Origin: Eutreptiella sp. 'Long Island Sound 2002'
Taxonomy: Eukaryota > Protista > Euglenida
Length of the DNA: 64,000 nucleotides
Direction: 5' to 3'
NCBI GenBank assembly: GCA_964036045.1
Contig: OZ038378.1
Location: 200,136,001-200,200,000, forward strand
Shown: piece by piece, positions 1-18,175 of the stretch
Numbering within the stretch: position 1 is the first letter of the stretch
Layout of the letters: each line of letters begins with the position of its first letter
Notes under the pieces: model-generated
Told to the model about the DNA's origin: nothing
The model's database searches: none
The model's input: the letters and a program-made list of their open reading frames with translations, nothing else
Program-made: the position numbers and the translations under genes

Positions 1-3000
1 CAGATCGCCCGCGAGCTAGGGACGACGGGGTGCTACGCCCCCTGGCGGCCATGTATCGGCAGCTGCGGCGGGCGTTCCGCCTGGCGGGGGCGCTAGGGGC
101 GTGGTGGCAGGCCACCAACGGCATCCTACAGGGGTGCCCCCTCAGGGTCATTTTGATCAATTTCCTCACCACAGTGTGGAAGATGGAGATTGACACCATG
201 AGGCGCCACGTCTTCGTGACGACCGCCGCGCTCCCGCCGCTGCTCGAACAGCCCTGGGCAGCACCAGGGCAGCCGCTGCCCTCGCCGCGCCTGCGGGCGT
301 AAGGCCCAGGGCGCGAGGACGTTTGCCCCCTGGGGTATGCGGACGACACCAGGCCATCACGCTCGAGCCCCGGCTCGGAGCGCAACGGATCCCCGACTCG
401 CAAGCAGTCGTGGACCGCACGGCCGTCTAGCTAGCGGACACCGGACATAACGCCAACGCCGGGAAGTCCAGCTCATGGCGGATGAGCGACCAACCAGGCG
501 CAGCCGGTCACCCTGCACGGAGTGCCAATCCCGTTGGCACTCAGCGTGGGGGTACGCCTCGACCCAGAAAGAGGCACCGGACCGGTGGTGCACGAGCGAT
601 TCGCGTGCGGGGCCGCCATCCTGCGGCGAGTGGGATGCTTGCCGCGAGTGGGATGCCTGCCGACCTTCCGCATGCCGGAGGTGGCCATTGGCACGCTAGC
701 CCTCGCCAAGGCGTCGTACGGAGTGGACCTCGCGGACGTCAGCTCCCAGGACGTGGCGCGGCTAGAGCTGGCGGCGGTCCGCGCCCTGTGGGGACCCACG
801 CGCACCTCACGGGCGAAGGAGGTGCTTTGGGCGGTCTTGGTGCCAGGGCACCGGGTCTCACCAGTATGGCGCCTCCAGTATTCGAGAGTACTGTGGCTGG
901 CCCGCCAGGCACGCACGCTAGGAGCCGGACCGTTGCTGGTCCAGGCAATACTGGAGGGAACCGACTACCCACCGGACACAGGACCAGTGGGCAGGGCCCT
1001 GCAGTCGGTCCGGCAGCTGCGCTGGGAGGCCGTGCACGGCTGGTGGGTGTGGCGCGAGCTGGGGCAGTGCGAACAGCTACATCTGGTCCTGGGGGACTGG
1101 GGCGAGGTATGCCACCGGGTGCGGGAGTCGCGGCGGTACACCGCCGTCGCGGCGGCACTGGAACGGCGCCGACCAGCCACCTTTGGGGGGCTAGGGGCGG
1201 AGGTTTGCAGGCTCGCCTGCACCCAGGGCATGACGGTGGCCAGCTCGGAGACGGAGCGCTCGCTGCTATGAGCACTACAAGCCGGGGCGACGTGGACCGG
1301 GGCACAGGTCCGGAAGCATCAAATTTTGGATTTAACAGCCTACCCCTACTGCGGGGGCCCCCCGGAGACGGAGGTCCATCTCCTATGGGACTGCCCGCTA
1401 TGTTTGCCCGCGGTGGCAAACACAGCGGGCCGCCTGGCTCCCGCTAGTGCGGGCCGAGGCAGCGCAGTTGCCGGCACTGGCCCTCCCGTTAGCGTGGCCG
1501 GTTTGCCTGCGCGCGACGGGCCTGTTGCCGGTAGCATTAGTCAAACCAGAGGAGGTGGATCAGGCGGGGCGGCTCATGCACCGCCTGTATGGCATATATC
1601 TGGCGGTGCTTTCGGCACGCATGGGAGCAGAAGTTGCGGCACGTCGAGACGCGGGCGCGGGCCCCTCGGTCTTTGCGATCGCACTCAGACGCCCTCCCGA
1701 TGCGCGCCGGGGCTACCCTTGGGGACAATTGGGTGCGGGCCCACATCCCCCTGCACCACCAACAACGCTGCTGGCTTTGCGCGCCGGCCCGCCGCCGGGA
1801 CGGCCATGGGAGGCGTTCTTCGCGATGGCGCTCCTGCAGTGGGCCCAGCGACTACCGGCTGCGGGGGGTCACGTTGCCGCTACGCACCAGGGGCCAAGTG
1901 CTGAAAATGGCCCTAGATGCGTTGCAGCTGCATTTGCAAGCAGGGGACCTTCTGCAGGGCAAGGAGGTGTGGATGGCCAAATCCCTCTTGCCGCTGGGGG
2001 CGTGGCCGCAGCCCGCGCAGCCGGCGGGGGCCGGCTCTGTGGCGGCGTCCTAGGCCGCGCGGGGCTCGCCAAGCGCGCGCAAACGCCCCCGCTCGCGAAC
2101 TCCCTCACCGGCGCACGTGACGCGACGAGCGCGCCTGGCAGAGCACAAGTGCGCGCGACGCCCAGAGGAGCCCTCAGCCCCCCCTCCCATGCGTCTCCAG
2201 GGGGGGGGCAGCATAGCCTAAGTGGCTCCGGTATGCCAAACGAGCGGGGAGGGCTGAGGCAGCCCTTCCCGCCCTCCCCGCTCCCCCCAGGGGGAACCGC
2301 CGGGCAAGGGGGAGCACACGGGGAACGGCTACAGGCGTCACGAGCGCTGGCAGGGCGCTCGGACGGACACACATGCGTGGGGGGCGTACAACCGCGTCCT
2401 CATCCCCCCCCTCCCTCCCGAGGGCTGGCGGATATTTTTGGGGACATCTCCCGCCGGCTGATGGCGGCGCGGGCGGGGTCATCAGCCACAGGAGAGGGCA
2501 TTGACCCCCCCCCCCCCCCCGAAAGGGGGGGGCGTCAGGAGCAGGGGACATCGGTCGATCCCCACCCCATCCCTCGGGGGGTGGCGCGCAGGGGGCGGAG
2601 GCGGCGACCTCTGTAGCACAGGTGGAGCTGGATCCACCCCCCCCCAAGGGGCCGTGCCGGGGCAACCAGGGCAGTTTCTCCCCCCCTCCCCCCCACAGCA
2701 AAGGGCACAGCGGGTGGGGGGGGAACGAATAGTGCAGCCACGGCGCCCTATGCAGACCCTGTGTGATGAGCACAGGGCCCTAGCATGCAAGTCATGCAAG
2801 GGGCACAAGGGGGTGCGGCACTGCTGTAGCCGCCATCACGAGGGGCATCCCAGGGTGCTGAGGGAGGGGGTCAACGGTGTCTGCCGGTTCAGGGGGGGGG
2901 GGGGGGGGGCTGCAGCAGCAACTGGGCACTATGCCCTTCGGAGGGCCGGTGCGAGCGCTGGCTCCCTTGTTTGGGGGAGGGGGCGGGGGTCTAGCAGGGC

Positions 3001-3203
3001 CGGGAGCAGCGGTGCTGCCACGCGGGGGCCTCGGAGGAGGGCACATAACCCGAGGCGGACGTCCTTCCGCCGCGCCGCGACACACTGGGGGCTAGGGGTG
3101 GGATAGGGCAGGCCACAGGCAGGCTCTAACCCGCTAACCCCTAACCCTCCTGTCGCAAGAGCGGCCAGGACATTAAAAGCCTTCAACCCTCGTTAATAGT
3201 ACA
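1..3203 (+). mobile_element. Non-LTR retrotransposon copy 1; degenerate, 5' part lies outside the window
   Basis: Colinear with 5671-9481 (RT GILQGCPL and YADD, CPYCGGPPETEVHLLWDCP knuckle, C-terminal Cys/His motif). Has in-frame stops, frameshifts and two internal deletions (near 1848 and near 1999). Ends in the shared terminus ...ccctcgttaatagtaca at 3203. Confidence 0.93.
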
Positions 3204-4530
3204 GGCGGCGCGAGCACTGCGGGCGTGGCTGCAGCCCGCGCGGCCGGCCGGGGCCGGCCCCGTGGCGGCGTCCCAGGCCGCACGGGGCTCGCCCAGCGCA
3301 CGCAAACGACCCCACCCGCAATCATCCTCGCCAGAGCGCGAGACGCGACGAGCACGCCCGGAGCACGAGCACGCGCGACGCCAGGAGGAGTTCCCGCCCC
3401 CCCCCCCAAGCGTCTCCAGGGGGGGGGCACACAGCTTAAGCGGCTCCGGTATGTTAAACCAGCAGGGAGAGCTCAGGAGGTCCTTCCAGCTCTCCCCGCC
3501 CCTCCCAGCGGGAGCCACCGGGCACGGGGGGGCACGCGGAGTCCAAGCGCCACGCGCGCCAGCCGGACGCCCGGGCGGACACGCACGAGTGGGGGGGGTT
3601 CAGCCGCGTCCCCACCCCCCCTCCCTCCCCTCCCGGGGGCTGGCGGACATTTTCGGGGACATCTCACGCCGGCTGACGGCGGCTCGGGCGGGGTCATCAG
3701 CCAAAGGGGAGGGCGCCGACCCCCCCCCGGGGGCCGCGAACCCCCCCCAAGGGGGGGGGCAGGACCAGGGGGCTTCGGTCGAACCCCACCCAAGTCTATC
3801 GGGGGGCGGCGCGCCGGGGGCGGAGGCGGCGGTGGGGGACCCCTCAGGGGGGGGACAGGAGATGTCGACAGACCCCCACCCCACAGGGGACGGCTCCAGG
3901 GGGGCCGTGGCGGCGACGTCCGCCGCGCGGGCGGGGCAAGACCCCTCTCCAGGGGCAGTCACAGGGCATCAGGGAGAGACCCTGCCCCCCTCCCCCCCAC
4001 AGAAGAGGGCGCAGCGGGCAGGGGGAAAAAGGGTGGGGCAGCCGCGGCGCCCCATGCAGACCCTGTGCGATGAGCACAGGGCCCCGGCATGCAAGTCATG
4101 CAAGGGGCACAGGGGGGTGCGGCATTGCTGCAGCCGCCATCACGAGGGGCATCCCAGGGTGTTGGGGGGAGGACAACGGTGCCTGCCGGTGCAGGGGGGG
4201 GGGCTACAGCAGCGAGCAGGCGTGTTGCCCTCAGGAGGGTCGGCGATTATGCCAGCCCCCGTGACCGGGGGGGAGGGGGGAGGCCCAGCAGGGCAGGGGA
4301 CGGCGGCGTCGCCCCGCGGCGGCACTCGGGGCCCAGATAAGGGCCACGGGAGGGCCTCCGAGGAGGGCACATAGCCTCAGGAGGGCGTCCTTCCGCCGCG
4401 CCGCGACATACCGGGGGGCCGGGGCTGGGATAGGGCAGGCTTCAGGCAGGCTCTAACCCGCTAACCCCTAACCCTCCCGTCGCAAGAGCGGCCAGGACAT
4501 TAAAAGCCATCAACCCTCGTTAATAGTACA
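3204..4530 (+). mobile_element. Non-LTR retrotransposon copy 2; 1.33-kb 3' portion only
   Basis: Starts at the position matching 8152 of copy 3 (ggcggcgcgagcactgcgg). The C-terminal frame is open (ORF 3262-4374, ending ...RASEEGT*). Same 3' terminus at 4530. Confidence 0.93.
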
Positions 4531-4532
4531 GG

Positions 4533-6053
4533 CGGGGCACGGCGGCCTTGATCCGCGAGGTGCGGCAATGCCCCAAGCAGATGCGGGCAGGCGGAGGGCC
4601 GAAGACGTCGGTACTGGCCCGCATACATGCCGCGCAGGGGGCGGCGCGCTCGTTGCGGCGGCAAGCGCACCCCCCACAACGGCCGGCCGACAGGGTGCGG
4701 GGGAGGGGGGAGAGCACGTCCCACTCCTGGTGCGCGCTGCGCCGGCGGGTGCAGCGGTTGCACGAGTTGCAGATGCCGGAACTGGCCCGATTTCCGCTGA
4801 CGCCGCAGGCGGTAGCCAACGCCGGGGCGCCCGTGCCGTCCGCGGCGGCACTGGACGAGTGCATAGAGCAGCTCAAGAGGCTGGCGGCCACGCAGGTGCA
4901 GCGGGAGGACCGGGAGCGAGTGCAGGCGTGGCGATCCTGGCTGCAGGCCGAGTGGGGAACCAAGCCAGGTGCAGTGTACCGATGGCTCAAGGAGGAGGGG
5001 TTCTCACCGCCGGTGGTGTTTATTGCGCGGCCGGATGGAACCCCCACGGCCAACGTCCAGGAGATGGACGAGCTAGTCCGCGCGGCGTGGGGGCCCATCA
5101 ACCGCAAGTACGCGGAAGGGCCGGAGCCCTGCCCAGATGCCTTCGTGGCGAAGTACGGGCACCTGCTGTATCGCGTACCCATGTTGGCCAAGCAGCTGAC
5201 AGGGCCGTACCTCAGGCGCCGCCTCATGGCCATGCGCCCATCGGCCATGGGCCTGGACGGGTGGAGCTTGCAGGACCTGCGGGCGCTCCCGGACAGGGTG
5301 CTGAATTGGCTGGCCCAGCTCCTCACGCTGATTGAGGAGGTGGGCCGGTGGCCCACCTTATTGGCCCAGGGATACACCTCCCTCATCCCCAAGCCAGGGG
5401 AGGAGGGGCCATTGGGCACGCGCCCGCTGACGGTCCTGTCCATGGTCTACAGACTGTGGGCGGGGACCCGTCTGTGGGAAGTAATGCGGTGGCAGGAGTC
5501 CTGGGTCCATCCGCGGGCCTTCGGGTTCCGCCTGGCGCGGGGGGCCGTAGATGCGGCCACGGTCACGCAGGCCCTCCTAGAGCTGGCCCGGCTCAAGGGA
5601 TGGCGGCTGGAGGGGCTGAGCCTAGATTATGTCAAGTGCTTTGACCTCATCCCGCAAGCGGTGGTGCTGCGGATCGCCCGCGAGTTGGGCATGGACGACG
5701 GGGTGCTGCGCGCCCTGGCGGCCATGTATCGGCAGCTACGGCGGGCGTTCCGCCTGGCAGGGGCGCTGGGGGCGTGGTGGCAAGCCACCAACGGCATCCT
5801 GCAGGGGTGCCCGCTCAGCGTCATTTTGATCAATATCCTCACCACGGTGTGGAAGATGGAAATTGACACAATGCGACGCCACGTCGTGGTGGCGACCGCC
5901 GCACTCCCGCCGCTGCTCGAACGGCCACGGGCAGCCCCGGGGCAGCCGCTGCCTTCACCGCGCCTGCGGACGCAGGGCCCGGGGCGCGCGGACTTATGCC
6001 CCCTGGGATATGCGGACGACACCCAGGCCATCACGCTCCAGCCCGGCCCGGCG
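4533..6053 (+). CDS. Non-LTR reverse transcriptase, N-terminal segment (open from the 5' truncation point)
   Basis: Non-LTR RT motifs in order: SAMGLDGW, LIPKPG, RPLTVLSMVYRLW, LDYVKCFD, NGILQGCPLS, and YADD at 6009-6020. The frame shifts at the C-run 6052-6054. Confidence 0.92.
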
Positions 6054-9000
6054 CGCCAGGGGTCCCCGACTCGCAGGCGGTCGTGGACCGCACGGCCGTT
6101 TGGCTGGCAGACACCGGGCAGAGCGCCAACGCCGCGAAGTCTAGCTCATGGCGGATGAGCGACCAGCAGGCGCAGCCGGTCACCCTGCACGGGGTGCCGG
6201 TCCCGCTGGCACGGGAGTTTAAGCAGCTCGGGATCGGAGTGCGCCTGGATCCAGAGAAGGGCACCGGACCGGTGCTCCAGGAGCGGTTTGCGCGCGGGAC
6301 CACCATTTTGCGGCGGGTGGGGTGCCTGCCTACGTTCCGCATGCGGGAAGTGGCCATTGGGACGCTGGCCCTCGCCAAGGCGATGTACGGGGTGGAGCTA
6401 GCAGATGTCGGCTCCCGGGACGTGGCGCGACTGGAGTTGGCCGCGGTCCGCGCACTGTGGGGACCCACACGCACCTCGCGGGCAAAGGAGGTGCTATGGG
6501 CGGTCTTGGTGCCGGGGCACCGGGTCTCCCCCATGTGGCGCCTCCAGTACTCGAGAGTACTGTGGCTGGCCCGCCAGGCACGCACGCCAGGGGCCGGGCA
6601 AGTGCTAGTCCAGGCAATATTGGAGGAAACGGACCGTCCGCCGGACACGGGACCAGTGGGCAGGGCCTTGCAGTCGGTCCGGCAGCTGCGCTGGGAGGCG
6701 GTGCACGGATGGTGGGTGTGGCGCGTGCCAGGGCAGCGCGAACAGCTACACTTGGTCCTGGGGGACTGGGGCGAAGTATGCCACCGGGTGCGGGAGTCGC
6801 AGCGATACACCGCGTTGGCGGCGCTGGAACGGCGCAGACCAGCCACCTTTGGGGGGCTGGGGGCGGAAGTATGCAGGCCCGCCTGCTCCCAGGGCATGAC
6901 GGTGGCCGGCTCGGAGACGGAGCGCTCACTGCTGCGAGCACTGCAAGCCGGGGCAACATGGACCGGGGCGCGGGTCCAGAAGCATCAAATTTCGGATTTA
7001 GCAGCCTGCCCCTATTGCGGGGGCCCACCGGAGACGGAGGTCCACCTCCTGTGGGACTGCCCGCAGTGGCAAGCGCAACGGGCCGCCTGGCTCCCGCTGG
7101 TGCAGGCCGAGGCAGCGCCGCTACCGGCACTGGCCCTCCCGCAGGCGTGGCCGGTGTGCCTGCGCGCGACGGGCCTGTTGCCGGCGGCATTGGTCCAGCC
7201 AGAGGGGGTGGAGCAGGCGGGGCGGCTCATGTACCGTCTCTATGGCATGTATCTGGCGGTGCTATCGGCGCGCATGGGAGCGGAAGTCGCGGCACGCCGA
7301 GACGCGGGCGCGGGCCCCTCGGTCTTTGCGATCGCGCGCAGACGCCCTCCCGATGCGCGCCGGGGCTACCCATGGGGGCAACTGGGCGCGGGCCCACATC
7401 GCCCGGCGCCACCAGCGGCGCCGCTGGCGTTGCGCGCCGGCCCGCCGCCGGGATGGCCATGGGAGGCATCCTTCGCGGTGGCGCTCCTGCAGTGGGCAGG
7501 CCAGCTGCGGTGGCTACCAGGGCAGGGCCATGTGACATACGTGGAGCTGGCCCTGGACTTCGAGGCACACGCGGAACGGGCCCTCCCGGCCCCCAGCGAC
7601 CACCGGCTGCGGGGGGTCACCCTGCCGCTACGCACCAGGGGCCAAGTGCTGAAGATGGCCCTGGATGCATTGCAGCCACATCTACAGGCAGGGGACCTCA
7701 TGCAGGGCAAGGAGGTATGGATGGCGAAGTCCCTGCTGCCGCTGGGGGGCTTCAGGTGTGTGGGGCGGTCGGCGCGCCCACTGTTCGCGCGCCCGGAAGC
7801 CATGCTGTTCCAGATGCGCCAGCTGGAGGCACACTGCCGAGCGCTGTGGGCGCGGCGCCTGGCGCGGCCGGGAGCGGGGCGGCAGGACGTGTTCCTCTTG
7901 GATTACCTCCCCCCGGCAGGACCAGGACAGCAGCCCCTGCGGCCCTTTCAACGCTTGCCGCGCCGGCGGGTGCAGCGCGACCGGCGCGGGGCCGGAGGCG
8001 GGGACGCGGACCGCGTAGCACCGCCGCCGCAGGTGGCCCTGTGTGCGCGACACCGGGCCCCGCCCTGTGCCGCCTGCGTGCAGCGGGGCGCCGAGCACTG
8101 CTGCCAGCGGGCGCACGAAGGGCACCGCATGGACGCGGCACAAGCACGCGTGGCGGCGCGAGCACTGCGGGCGTGGCTGCAGCCCGCGCGGCCGGCCGGG
8201 GCCGGCCCCGTGGCGGCGTCCCAGGCCGCACGGGGCTCGCCCAGCGCTCGCAAAAGACCCCGCCCGCAATCATCCTCGCCGGAGCGCGAGACGCGACGAG
8301 CACGCCCGGAGCACGAGCACGCGCGACGCCAGGAGTTCCCGCCCCCCCCCCCAAGCGTCTCCAGGGGGGGGGCACACAGCTTAAGCGGCTCCGGTATGTT
8401 AAACCAGCGGGGAGAGCTTAGGAGGCCCTTCCCGCTCTCATCGCCCCTCCCAGCGGGAGCCACCGGGCACGGGGGGGCACGCGGAGTCCAAGCGCCACGC
8501 GCGCCAGCCGGACGCCCGGGCGGACACGCACGAGTGGGGGGGGTACAGCCGCGTCCCCACCCCCCCTCCCTCCCCTCACGGGGGCTGGCGGACATTTTCG
8601 GGGACATCTCACGCCGGCTGACGGCGGCTCGGGCGGGGTCGTCAGCCAAAGGGGAGGGCGCCGACCCCCCCCCGGGGGCCGCGAACCCCCCCCAAGGGGG
8701 GGGGCAGGACCAGGGGGCTTCGGTCGAACCCCACCCTAGTCTTTCGGGGGGCGGCGCGCCGGGGGCGGAGGCGGCGGTGGGGGACCCCTCAGGGGGGGGA
8801 CAGGAGATGTCCATTGACTGCCATCCCCCAGGGGACGGCTCCGGGGGGGCGGCGGCGGCGACATCCGCTACACGGGCGGAGCAGGAACCCCCCCCGGGGG
8901 CAGTCACAGGACAGCAGGCAGAGTCCCTTCCCCCTTCCCCCCCACAGAAGAGGGCGCAGCGGGCGGGGGGCAAAAGGGTGGGGCAGCCGCGGCGCCCCAT

Positions 9001-9325
9001 GCAGACCTTGTGCGATGAGCACAGGGCCCCAGCGTGCAAGTCATGCAAAGGGCACAGGGGGGTGCGGCATTGCTGCAGCCGCCACCACGAAGGGCATCCC
9101 AGGGTGTTGGGGGGGGGACAACGGTGTCTGCCGGTCCAGAGGGGGGGGCTGCAGCTGCAGCAACAAGCGGGCGTCTTGCCCTCCGGAGGGTCGGCGGTCG
9201 AGCCAGCCCCCATGATCAAGGGGGAGGGGGGAGGCCCAGCAGGGCAGCGGACGGCGGCGTCGCCCCGGGGCGGCACACAGGGCCCAGGTCAGGGCCACGG
9301 GAGGGCCTCCGAGGAGGGCACATAG
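6054..9325 (+). CDS. Continuation of the retroelement polyprotein: RT end and thumb, CCHC knuckle, C-terminal region with two Cys/His repeats
   Basis: FKQLG (RT motif 7), CPYC-x8-H-x4-C at 7007-7060, Cys/His repeats at 8042-8125 and 9011-9097. Copy 1 has C4 (368-371) where this copy has C3; restoring one C fuses both segments into one ORF. Confidence 0.88.
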
Positions 9326-9369
9326 CCTCAGGACGGCGTCCTTCCGCCGCGCCGCGACACACCGGGGGG

Positions 9370-9481
9370 CCGGGGGTGGGATAGGGCAGGCTTCAGGCAA
9401 GCTCTAACCCGCTAACCCCTAACCCTCCCGTCGCAAGAGCGGCCAGGACATTAAAAGCCATCAACCCTCGTTAATAGTACA
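9370..9481 (+). other. Conserved structured 3' terminus of the retroelement (also near 3085-3203 and 4420-4530)
   Basis: G-rich tract, then ctctaacccgctaacccctaaccct, then hairpin ccg-tc-GCAA-ga-(g)-cgg, then an invariant end. Near-identical in all three otherwise diverged copies. Confidence 0.75.
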
Positions 9482-9517
9482 GCGCGCGCACACACACACA
9501 CACACACACATACGCAT
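9482..9517. repeat. (CG)n(CA)n microsatellite at the array's 3' junction
   Basis: gcgcgcgcacacacacacacacacacatacgcatac directly after the terminus. Confidence 0.9.
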
Positions 9518-10501
9518 ACAAGGAATCGGCCCCAAAAGTTGTGCCTGTACCTGCAACACTACATCTTTCTGCATTCTGTGCACAGCCCTACACCAATGCC
9601 TACTTTGCCTACTTGTCCATGCATGCCCTGCTTGTGCCACAGCCTCCTCCCCCCAAATTTCTGCTGAATTTAGAGACCTCTCAGCAGTGTTTTCTACCAT
9701 TAGTGCTTGCATTAGTGCCCGCTTGATCAAGAGTGTACGTACACCTGCACGTACACAACAACGCTCCCAAAGCCAAGAAAGCACTGATATGCTAACCCCT
9801 GCCAGATCTCCTCCTCTTCGGGCCAGAAGGGAAGAGGTACTGCATCAGATCAGTCCCCAGTTGAAACAGATGGCCCTGCCTCAGAGCGACCTCACAGAGC
9901 TGTTGCATGCACGCCTTTGTACCAAAGTGCCAAAGGGGCCTCTAAAGAAAAAGAAAAACGCAGAAAAGCTCACGAACGGACACCTTGCAAAACAAGCATG
10001 CTCATTACACCAGAGCTAACAGCTATCGTGTTTACAGAGCAGCACTGCGCGAGCCTCACCAGAGAAAGTCTCCCAAGGCCTTCTCTACTTGCCCTCCACA
10101 AGTTCACGATGATGTTTTTGATGTTCTCCAGACCGCTTGAACGACTCTTATTGCTGATTACTCCACTACACCTCTGAACTTCCTCTGTTTGTTTCTGCTT
10201 GACACATACATATGACACTAAATACCATTGTCTGACTGACAGCTTGACTGACTGTGATTGTCTCATTAACTGGTATCAGACACAGTGTGTGTCTTGAGGT
10301 TAACCAGGCTTGGCATAGAGAATAAGATGCATTTATGCCTCATTGTGGAGCATTGCCTCAAGTTTGCATTGTTGCAGCACTGTCTGTCTGTTTTTCAAAC
10401 ATTATAATCCAGTCTCCTAATTAGGCCCCCCCCGAAAAAATTCCCCCCCTGCTTTCTTCTTCCACATCCTTTCCCGTCTGGCTTCTTTGTTTGTTCCTCA
10501 G

Positions 10502-13975: not shown

Positions 13976-16194
13976 AAACAGCCGCAACCAAAATAACAAA
14001 AATACCGCACAACATAACACAGACAGCAGCACAACAAAAGAACGCGTCACAGGCTATCAGCAGGGCTACTGAAGCACACGACTATCAAAATTATCCTCAT
14101 GTGACAGCACAACTGGCCCCCTAGCTTCGATGGTCCAGGGCGGGGGGGGGGGGGGGGGCGAGGGGGCATATGGCAGAGGCCAGGCACTTTTGCTGGTCTG
14201 TAAGGCATTGCAAGACAGAAGCAGGCAAGAGGGCATCCACTGACGCCTTTTCATTTGTCGGCTGCTGCCACCGTGTGATGTGCGGACCCAACGATACGTT
14301 GCATATCTGTTGTGTGACTGCTCTAAATGGGAGTGTAGGGGAAGGGCGAGAGCTTTCTTGAATTGACTACCCGTTGCCTTGTTCTATCAATATCCACAGC
14401 TTGGTGTCCTAGCAACTCGGAAACACGAGTGACCCGGCCTGCATGTGCAGCTGCCGAGCCGTCCACAAGGGGCGGTCTGCAAACCAGACTGCTGTCCTAG
14501 TTTGACGGTGCAATGGGTGCTCTGTGTGCAGTGGCCAGATCCAGGGATCTGGCCTTCTGCCGGCCTTGTTGCCAGACCCCACATATGGCCTGTGATCCTG
14601 GAGGCCACTCGACCCCGCTGACCCATGCTGGTGTCCCTCCTTCATATGCCCCTCCCCCCCCCACACACCGTCTCCCGAGTCGGACAAGTCTTGTGAGGTC
14701 GGTGCAGACAACAAGCACCAAGCCTTAGGCCCCTTTCTGTCAGTGATCTTGATATGATGATATGGTGATACTGACAACTGCAGACCCTCCCCACGTGTCC
14801 ATCGCAAACTGCTCACTGGCGCTCTGAGGTGCTGTTGTTCTTCTCAGGTTGCATTTCTTCGAAAAGTTGTACTGCTGCTCTGTGGGAAGCTTCTCCCGGA
14901 AACCTCTGGAACGCAAGTATTGCTTCTTCTCGGGGCTGTGGTGTTGCAGTGATGGATATGGGGGGGGGGGGGGGTAATTTCGGGCAGGGGTAATTCCGTG
15001 GGGAAATTTCGTCTTTAAGGAAGGCGGCGAAATTTGCCCCTGGCGAAATCCGTGGATGGGCACATCCCTGTTGTGGTTGGCTCTTTCTGGTCTTTGGTGA
15101 GTCTACGTTGCAGTATCAATATGTGTTTCTTTGTCTGGGACCGTGATGGGACTGCATCTTGTCTTGTAGAGGGTGGGAGCCATGGGCTCTCACTTGCACA
15201 CAAAAAAAACAATGCAAACACAATCAGATTTCGAACTCTGACCAGAGCGGTAAGCACGCCGCCAAAGGTGGGCGCATCTGCGTGAAATGGGGTGGATTGC
15301 GATGTGTAGATTCTCTGTGACAATGGTGCCAGTGGTTTGTGACAACCTGCCATCGTTTATGCTTTAGGCGGATTTGGGGGCTCAATTTCGGCAGCTGCTG
15401 GGGCTGCTGCAGAGCCAGGCATTCCCAGAAGAAGTGCAGCGGCTGTTGGAAAAGCATAAGGAGGAAGAGATGATCCGGCAAGGTCTGTGCATGTGGATGT
15501 GTGGGGGTGTGCGGGTGGGTGAGTAGGTGGATGCCGGTTCCTACAGCCTCCCGCATGAGTTTCTGGTGCTGTCTGATTTTGGACGAATGCCACCCCCCAC
15601 CAACCAACGCAGTGAACTGATGTGGAGCACATGGTGGTCCTCCCTTCTTTTTATTCACCTACATCGCCTCCCTATCACTTCTCCTCTTGGGGCATGCTCT
15701 TTAGAGTTGACCTTCTGGTCGGCGCAAGCACGAAGGACAACGCTGAGAGGAAACAACCAACAGCGCTTTACTGTAGTAGAATGTAGACACATTGTGTCCA
15801 CGAAATAAGCCTGCGCAGAGAACATAATGCAACCCTAATACATGAAAGCCACAGCATGAACTGAGGTCAATTGCATATCAGGATTGGAGTCAGGATTATC
15901 ATTGGAATTGCTGGACATTGCTCATACCAGGACGTGCATTTGCGGAGCTCTTTCTGACCTGTGTACGGCCCCGCACCAACTGTTGGAAGCATGCCGCAGC
16001 AGGGCTCATGTTCCTGGGGACTGGATCAGCGCGACCGGATGCGACGCGACGCTGATGGTATTGAGGGATGCAGGTTGCGGTCTCCCCACCCCCCTTCCCC
16101 CACCTGCAATATTTCTTTGTCTTTGGTATGGGTATGTGCAGGTGTTTCATGTGTGCGTAGCTGCAGATGTGTTGCTTGACCCCGTGTTATGCAG

Positions 16195-16632: not shown

Positions 16633-18175
16633 ATTAGAATAATTAAAAACCAAGGTGCCCCCCCCCCCAGACCAAAGTGACCATCGTGGGAAAAAACGAA
16701 ATTTACAATCGGGAACATCTGGTCGGGCTATTTCCGGTACACAAACTTTTGGGTCCCTCCCCCCCCGCACCCCCCCCCCCCCCTCCCGCTCAAAAGACGC
16801 TCTGTCTCCATCCCTTCAGCAGTCGCCACCCCAGCTTGAGATATGCCTGCACCGCTCTGCCATCACCGAAAGTGCTTGGAAGCCATGGCAGTCTCGAAGG
16901 GCTCGACGCCTGATGGGCCCAGGCTGCTAAACGGGAGGCACTGGTGGATTGTGGTGGATTTTGCGGCAACACATTTTTGGGGCTGCCCCTCTCTCAGCCC
17001 TTTGAATGGTTCACAGGCAGATATGGACGTGGGCACTCTACGTTTTGAGAGGTGGCAATGTGTGCGGCCACCACTTTGCCAAGTGCCTGGCTGCAAGTCT
17101 CGGACTGGTGCAAAAGAGGGAGTGGTGTGGGGCAGCAGGAGGACGTGGAGGAGGAGCTCTGACTCTCCGTCACTCAGCCAGAGACCTGACCGCACACAGG
17201 AAGTACGGCAAAGCCTGCCACTTATGGTGCCCGAGGGCGTGTTGCGCAGTGCGAGCCCTCCCGGCATCATCGAGAGTACAGGGGGGAGGAAAGTTCCTCA
17301 GGGGGATTTTTCTGGGCGTGAAATTCCGTATTTCAAAGTGGAGCGGAATTTTCACCGCATTTTTTCAGTGTAGGTGCGAAACATTCCCCGGGTGGACAAA
17401 CAAACCTCCAGCAGCACCAAGCAAACACATATGGTGAAGTTCAATTCTACAACAATTCTGACGCTGAAGAATTGCTGGCTGCTTTGCTGTATTGTGTGTC
17501 TTTTGGGGATTACAATCCCATCCAATGCACTTGCCCACTGCGGGCCACTATTGTCCCCCTGCACTCCTTCCCGCTCCTGCACACCCCGGCCTCCTGTTCA
17601 CTGGTGCCGAGGTCTGCACAATGCATAGCTGGGGGGGTTTGATAGGCGTAAATTTTTCGGGGACCATTTCTCTGGTAAGAAAGGTGACGAAATTTTGCCT
17701 GGGGAAATTTTTGGGGTTGGGCCCTCTAGAGGTACCCGTGCAAACGGCTGTCACACGCTATTCCGGGTTCAGGTGGCGGCCTGGATGGGATTTTGGCTCC
17801 CGCGCGTTCGTCGGCATGCTTGGCTCCTCTTAGAAAGCACAATTCTGCGACCATGTTGTGGCAATGTGTTGTAATTTTGGAGTCTCTTTGTTGTGCGTGT
17901 CTTTTGTGTTTAATGGCAGTCATTAGGGGGTGCTTACCCTGCGACGCGCGGTTTGGGCAATTATCCTGGAATACAAGCAATATAGTGGTGCATACACACA
18001 TGCAATTTTTGTGTAACGTATACCCCTATGCACCCTTTTCCCCCTATTTTTGTTACTATTCTTACCTTTTTGGGCCTCTTCCCCCCACAAATGGTGCCTT
18101 TGTGGAGCGTCCCCAATATGGAATCGGCCATGTATGAGCTTTGAGGATGTCGATCCCTGCGCTTGACGTTGGTGA

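Follow-up and report, generated by a model that had tools for sequence, protein, structure and literature searches.

The first 9.5 kb of a 64-kb stretch of DNA from the euglenid Eutreptiella sp. 'Long Island Sound 2002' raise the question of how copies of a retrotransposon come to stand head-to-tail with identical 3' ends. This stretch, hereafter the window, covers positions 200,136,001 to 200,200,000 of contig OZ038378.1 (G000:C1:200136001-200200000; contig C1 has 200,966,160 bases). Its copies belong to a family of retrotransposons that lack long terminal repeats (non-LTR retrotransposons), also called long interspersed nuclear elements (LINEs), and that lack poly(A). The initial annotation compared the array with the telomeric arrays of HeT-A/TART and Gil elements and offered three origins for it: serial addition to a chromosome end or break, template jumping between transcripts, and nested insertion into GC-rich sites of older copies. 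The last of these comes nearest to the explanation that we consider probable, in which a site-specific LINE with an apurinic/apyrimidinic endonuclease (APE) repeatedly re-inserts into a 17-bp site that terminates a short retroposon (hereafter S) on its 3' side, and stacks its copies by re-insertion into the target-site duplication (TSD) through which it regenerates that site. The insertions would then have gone, not into GC-rich sites of older copies, but into one regenerated 17-bp site.

The window contains the 11-mer TTAATAGTACA at exactly three places, always on the forward strand, with ends at positions 3203, 4530 and 9481; 0.24 occurrences are expected by chance and none of 100 shuffled sequences reached three. 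Direct reading and self-comparison delimit three forward-strand copies of one LINE (Table 1), and the G+C content is 68-73% in the first 9.5 kb of the window against about 50% further on. Each following copy begins immediately past ...TACA, at a differing internal position of the element and without filler. Copy 1 has fragmented open reading frames (ORFs) and is 77-86% identical to copy 3 in BLAST comparisons. Copy 2 is 99.0% identical to the copies at loci L016 and L023 and 93.5% identical to copy 3. Copy 3, whose 5' truncation lies at about position 5173 of the full-length element of ~10,123 bp, carries one single-base frameshift near position 6041 (an indel relative to the open copy at L041) and is 97.7-98.6% identical to many other genomic copies. 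The three same-orientation copies that end alike are thus as the initial annotation described them, and so is their nature as a poly(A)-less non-LTR retrotransposon; copy 3 has an RVT_1 domain. That they are separate insertions of diverged copies was likewise correct. Unequal crossing-over or the tandem duplication of a single insertion would explain the common orientation and the repeated boundary sequence, but the members differ in truncation point, subfamily and age, and such an origin has next to no probability.

The interpretation of these junctions depends on where the LINE ends. The apparent shared 3' end is a 17-bp target-site duplication, CCCTCGTTAATAGTACA, and the LINE proper ends ...GCCATCAA. 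An off-target copy (L065, from another assembly, equivalent to G000 C2:62988335) has no 17-mer and ends ...GCCATCAA; a 16-bp direct repeat, CCTACCCAGAATGAAC, stands at either end of it (L065 positions 9597-9612 and 16897-16912) and abuts an (AC)n tract on the right. Because this copy has that end and a TSD of its own, the LINE proper can be said to end ...ATCAA and to make duplications of 16-17 bp. An 18-mer ending ...GCCATCAA was found at 296 places; of the first 100 listed, about 95 continue with the 17-mer or with a closely similar variant, and therefore the LINE is site-specific. The 17-bp site is present on both sides of canonical copies, and exactly 17 bp lie between tandem bodies. The initial description of the junctions holds for the differing 5' truncations and the absence of filler, but it had denied any spacer or TSD, and the last 17 bases are a duplicated target site.

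Variants of the site are distributed by locus. The variant ...TAGCACA occurs at 195 places, and about 70 of the first 100 stand in same-strand clusters made up of that variant only; one array (C4:151376901-151393293) contains six such sites. The LINE bodies that bear it belong to different subgroups and are not each other's closest relatives. At L018 the variant is common to S and to the right end of the LINE, and at L020 it is common to an old and a young neighbour. In six further arrays neighbouring sites share private rare variants, one of them a double substitution. Such array-private variants are what a locally duplicated target would give, and not what a 3' end borne by the RNA would give.

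The site originates from S, whose 3' terminus it forms directly before the RN-GC-(AC)n tail of this retroposon. In S, a conserved 5' part, in which the box AGAGGTTCTGACT stands, is followed by a variable middle and a conserved 3' end, ...CATGGGTCT plus the 17-mer, which is the only sequence common to S and the LINE. Genome-wide, 466 S ends were counted. S is the left edge of all readable arrays (the window, L004, L006, L015, L018 and L038) and, to judge by coordinates, at least 18 of 51 LINE clusters are preceded at close range by an exact S. It lies between (CA)n tracts in the window and at L006, L015 and L007, the last of which holds a solitary, diverged S. At the opposite edge, two variable bases, GC and (AC)n come after the last copy in 24-25 of 30 sampled loci, and the internal junctions of the sampled loci never show (AC)n. 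The window conforms to this pattern: its last 3' end does meet non-element DNA, as was initially noted, but the (GC)4(AC)n found there is not arbitrary, the same tail recurring at those other terminal copies. The possibility that (AC)n is the LINE's own tail or its direct insertion target was rejected, because internal junctions are without (AC)n and the off-target insertion point lies 16 bp upstream of the tract.

The DNA to the left of the window (L032) shows the corresponding edge of our array. A fourth CCCTCGTTAATAGTACA ends 365 bases before the window and is preceded by non-LINE DNA, namely a 5'-truncated S (L032:~9525-9636), itself preceded by (CA)n. This 17-nt piece was considered as an extremely truncated LINE, a reading rejected because it runs upstream into the distinct conserved element S. 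As S and (CA)n stand at the left and (GC)4(AC)n at the right, the array is bounded on both sides. It does not continue to the left of position 1 beyond S and the 364 bases by which copy 1 extends outwards, and the nested 5' halves of copies 2 and 3 that were to be sought upstream of the window are not there. No contig bridging the two window-specific junctions was found among short contigs from other sequencing runs; contigs from independent runs show the same types of junction, in which TACA is followed by short 3' fragments or by a full-length 5' end, or S precedes the site.

Unoccupied S sites, in which GA/GT-GC(AC)n comes after a lone 17-mer, number five exact cases, against more than 100 exact S ends; the landing sites seem nearly all filled. 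As for the nature of S, Rfam returned nothing above chance and ARAGORN nothing that would make it a known RNA gene. A scan of metagenome contigs gave no match to a 25-mer of S and 12 matches to the 17-mer, which look like chance (L071 among them). Relatives of S share the same AGAGGTTCTGA box and have other 3' ends (...AAAGTACAGAT, ...TTAATATTGTTCTACC), each followed by (AC)n; they were seen at L008 (oriented, ~1970-2330), L022 (~2580-2950) and L006 (~2230-2640). At L006, the (AC)n tract of such a relative is directly followed by a fragment of a related LINE, which is itself 5'-truncated.

The genomic distribution of the LINE bears on its supposed link with telomeres. A 21-mer ending ...TACA was found at 691 places genome-wide (338 on the forward and 353 on the reverse strand), against none for a control pattern. 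The first 100 listed places form 51 clusters, 23 of which have several ends; adjacent pairs are on the same strand in 47 of 49 cases and many spacings between neighbouring ends measure 31-700 nt. On C1, clusters occur at 5-36 Mb and at 143-201 Mb, in both orientations, and the terminal 10 kb at each end of this contig contain neither the LINE nor telomere arrays. None of the 15 C1 clusters lies between 36 and 143 Mb; it is in the distal thirds of the large contigs that the LINE and S mostly occur. The 3' termini, whose genome-wide mapping had been suggested initially as a check, thus lie at many internal positions and on both strands.

One of the initial proposals was that the copies were added serially to a chromosome end or break, as in HeT-A/TART, the array having become internal later. 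The head-to-tail arrangement, the precise 3' ends and the lack of poly(A) agree with such an origin, as do the three CTAACCC-like units of the 3' untranslated region (UTR) and the position of the window, 0.77-0.83 Mb from the right end of the 201-Mb contig. Nevertheless, other DNA bounds the array on both sides, the arrays, found on both strands, are spread over the distal thirds of the arms and not placed at the ends, and the contig ends have neither of the expected sequences in their last 10 kb. Instead of standing at chromosome ends with their 3' ends toward the centromere, the arrays occupy many internal positions, and the orientation of the one in the window is wrong for the nearby right end. 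Terminal addition would also put the youngest member at the 5' (distal) end, but the 5'-most copies are old and the youngest is found at the 3' end. Finally, the LINE encodes an endonuclease and makes TSDs. The chance that terminal addition built this array is accordingly minimal.

The relative ages of the copies can be compared within arrays. In the window, copy 1 reaches 87-89% identity with its best non-self genomic match and copies 2 and 3 reach 98-99% with their relatives, and hence the members of the array differ in age. Elsewhere, an older 'T' variant of the 3' UTR stands to the left of the young 'A' variant in five of five arrays and, among the sampled arrays, members below 92% identity stand to the left of members of at least 97% in seven, the reverse order being found in none. 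Old copies at the left and young ones beside the microsatellite mean that the downstream copy of the site is re-used and that the arrays grow at their 3' side.

This polarity also bears on the proposal that each stack is the product of one event, in which the reverse transcriptase (RT), on reaching the 5' end of an RNA, passes to the 3' end of a second RNA, as it does in R2. In favor of this, the junctions are exact, very short 3' fragments (31-100 nt) are common in stacks, and for copies 2 and 3 of the window, which are both young, a joint arrival is conceivable. Yet the members of the array differ in age, as the values for copy 1 against those for copies 2 and 3 show, and old members are consistently on the left. 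Jumping would moreover import the 17-mers of the donors, whereas site variants are uniform within arrays and the 17-mers between copies carry variants private to their locus, and it gives no reason why S should always be the last template. As the main cause of the stacks, template jumping is therefore very improbable, although some neighbouring young copies, copies 2 and 3 for instance, could owe their position to it.

Several points weigh against re-insertion into a duplicated site. The left-hand 17-mers are unlike their right-hand neighbours at L004, L006, L012 and L022, which we read as later mutation of site copies that are out of use. The site does not precede two of the 11 readable full-length 5' ends, and an exact site precedes 13 of ~57 full-length 5' ends, a figure that is an undercount due to site variants. 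The constant ends of related LINE families begin CCCTC, and the first few bases of the 17-mer could in view of this belong to the elements themselves. The dinucleotide that follows the 17-mer weakly co-varies with variants internal to the LINE (aaTagcc with GT in three of three cases), as would be expected if the RNA extended through the site; in a single tight LINE subfamily, this dinucleotide is mixed. In addition, most S sites and array edges were judged by coordinates or pattern counts, and the age of copy 1 rests on its identity to sampled copies, 40 of 761 candidates having been scored.

The co-variation of the dinucleotide and the constant CCCTC... ends also count in favor of another reading of the 17-mer, as the LINE's own 3' terminus. 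S and the LINE would then share it as a recognition tail, in the manner of a short interspersed nuclear element (SINE) and its LINE partner, and the element would home precisely to the junction of 17-mer and tail, without a TSD, for instance by the annealing of a read-through RNA. SINE/LINE pairs often have common 3' ends, and the 17-mer is perfectly conserved even across subfamilies whose 3' UTRs have diverged. On the other hand, the off-target copy at L065 manages without the 17-mer, ends ...ATCAA and has its own 16-bp TSD, and rare variants of the site stay within single arrays, where neighbours with unrelated bodies have them in common. An own terminus thus seems unlikely to us. A hybrid of both readings is conceivable, in which the RNA would carry the site only for annealing and the right-hand site copy would still be target DNA.

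If the 17-mer is a duplicated target, the arrays may be explained as follows. The LINE would enter the 17-bp site by target-primed reverse transcription: two staggered nicks about 17 bp apart would flank the site and reverse transcription would be primed from the nicked strand. Each new copy would be 5'-truncated to a variable extent, independently of the others, and with the duplication of the site every insertion would end up with a site copy on either side. The microsatellite tail would still adjoin the downstream one only, and it is this copy that would be targeted again, each new element being laid between the previous one and the (AC)n tract. The expected outcome would be S-site-old-site-younger-site-youngest-site-(AC)n; the order in the window is truncated S, copy 1, copy 2, copy 3 and (GC)4(AC)n. 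The (AC)n context would be what restricts targeting to the downstream site copy. Because the off-target copy at L065 also stands directly before (AC)n, the tract may well be part of the recognised target.

A further-reaching and rather doubtful possibility is that the LINE and S form a dedicated safe-harbour system. Homing would be achieved by means of the 17-mer and the adjacent microsatellite, possibly with a read-through 3' RNA pairing with the nicked target (RNA-assisted homing), more than 90% of the S sites would be filled, and related euglenid families would each have a landing sequence of their own.

The element itself, about 10.1 kb in length, belongs to the APE-type LINEs. Its full length was obtained from a 10,123-bp spacing of 3' ends and from a recurrent 5' start, CCTGCTTTGTTTGG... 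The copies combine a constant 3' end, variable 5' truncation and flanking target-site duplications, as is the rule for LINEs, and one open frame of up to 3311 codons is present in many of them. In the open copy at L041, Pfam identifies an APE endonuclease, RVT_1 (E = 3e-09) and, weakly, a zf-RVT/CCHC match; the Exo_endo_phos domain (amino acids 167-376; 33.5 bits for a cut-off of 24.5) is N-terminal to the RT. The three copies of the window lack the APE domain because they are 5'-truncated. The element has no poly(A) or simple-repeat tail of its own, as it ends ...GCCATCAA and the (AC)n is target DNA; since LINEs without tails are known, this does not bar it from membership. Many open-frame copies are 97-99% identical to one another, and the LINE is, to judge from its sequences, recently active.

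A protein search of the genome gave more than 10,000 first-look candidate relatives. Outside this genome, the closest relative is a protein of Diplonema papillatum with APE and RT domains (P0012, 2383 amino acids), 31% identical over 65% of the APE-RT region; its name in the source is R2-like, yet an APE domain is present in it. The similarity suggests a euglenozoan lineage whose LINE proteins are very long. The closest solved structure is human L1 ORF2p, in a comparison that covered L1 and R2 structures only. A literature search found nothing on this LINE family in Euglena.

Table 1. Features of the array in the window (positions are those of the 64-kb stretch).
Feature	Position	Strand	Remarks
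LINE copy 1, body	1..3186	+	Old, several broken frames, 5'-truncated; starts at L032:9637, 364 bases left of the window
17-bp target-site copy CCCTCGTTAATAGTACA, copy 1/copy 2 junction	3187..3203	+	
LINE copy 2, body	3204..4513	+	Young, subfamily B; last 1.3 kb at the 3' end
17-bp target-site copy, copy 2/copy 3 junction	4514..4530	+	
LINE copy 3, body	4531..9464	+	Young, subfamily A; ends ...GCCATCAA
Reverse transcriptase domain of copy 3 (Pfam RVT_1-matched part)	5385..5870	+	
CCHC zinc-knuckle motif, downstream of the RT	7007..7069	+	Read from the translation; weak zf-RVT match at the same place in L041
Terminal 17-bp target-site copy	9465..9481	+	The copy that retains the microsatellite context
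(GC)4(AC)n tail belonging to S, the original target	9482..9519	+	

Some additional traits of the family were observed. Far downstream of the RT, a Cys/His-rich motif (C..H....C..C...HCC..H..GH) occurs twice. The giant frame has a coiled-coil-like stretch near its N-terminus, and its last ~1100 residues had no Pfam match (for these traits: window 8039-8125 and 9008-9097; L041; L014, oriented, 1683-3182). The 3' UTR contains three imperfect CTAACCC units about 55 nt before the end of the element; they are kept in all three copies (window 3125-3150, 4452-4477 and 9403-9428) and resemble the C-strand of the TTAGGG telomere repeat. The 13-mer CTGCTTTGTTTGG, with which the full-length LINE starts, is also found behind fixed sequences of several other repeat families. 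It has 289 genome-wide matches, against 16 for a control, many of them paired ~10.5 kb apart behind ATCCTGTCCTTGCTCTACTTG, and may be a shared initiator or promoter-like motif. At L019 (oriented, 1683-1700) the 17-mer is followed by CG CTCTTTTTTCG GCGCC..., similar to the 3' part of the euglenid spliced leader; this may be a trans-spliced RNA retro-copied into the LINE target.

LINE families that are 52-61% identical at the protein level are also stacked head-to-tail or have constant ends that begin CCCTC/CCTCC (...CCCTCTTTGTGTGTTTTTTA, ...CCTCCTCTCTTCTAATACA; L067 6040-6065 and 15218-15243, L066 ~15060-15100), and the whole clade may share the habit of site-specific stacking. Between 33 and 55% of the words sampled from the window were present in several estuary metagenome runs and in a second labelled organism, B (runs X5, X7, X8 and X11). 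It follows that the LINE family, or its host, occurs in environmental samples.

The tandem arrays of R1, whose members are separated by a 14-bp TSD, arise through re-insertion into that TSD (PMC2718515). Like R1, an element of arthropod ribosomal DNA (rDNA), the LINE described here is of the APE type, sequence-specific and makes a TSD of fixed length; in both, head-to-tail copies have only the TSD between them and the duplicated target is entered again. By insertion behaviour, the R1 arrays would thus be the closest precedent. The two differ in their target, which is the 28S gene for R1 and the 3' end of a dispersed short retroposon beside (AC)n here, in the length of the TSD (17 bp here), in the site copy that is re-used (the upstream one in R1, the downstream one here) and in the single giant ORF of our LINE. 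Other LINEs are known to target microsatellites or repeats, namely Waldo and Mino of the R1 clade and Kibi, Koshi and Tx1L of the Tx1 group. These share with our element an APE endonuclease and targets that are harmless to the host, at or near simple repeats or in a mobile element; unlike them, it enters a unique 17-bp retroposon site just upstream of the microsatellite and not the microsatellite itself. HeT-A/TART of Drosophila and GilM/GilT of Giardia also form head-to-tail rows of variably 5'-truncated non-LTR copies, but the arrays of our LINE are non-terminal, occur in both orientations, have the opposite age polarity, contain TSDs and are bordered by ordinary DNA.

The attractive idea of a retrotransposon telomere in a euglenid, which found no support, gives way to a testable case of a site-specific LINE whose target is regenerated with each insertion. 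Its polarity of re-use is opposite to that of R1, and APE-type site-specific LINEs have hardly been described so far in Euglenozoa. For the annotation of this genome, the 17-mer should be masked as a TSD rather than counted as LINE sequence, and the stacks of 30-100-nt 'fragments' would, if the 17-mer is a TSD, represent serial abortive insertions and not assembly errors. LINEs of this kind are natural cases of safe-harbour integration, and the target is short in the present one. Should the LINE and S indeed form a dedicated safe-harbour system, the choice of target would be set by a short, exchangeable sequence and not by the protein alone.

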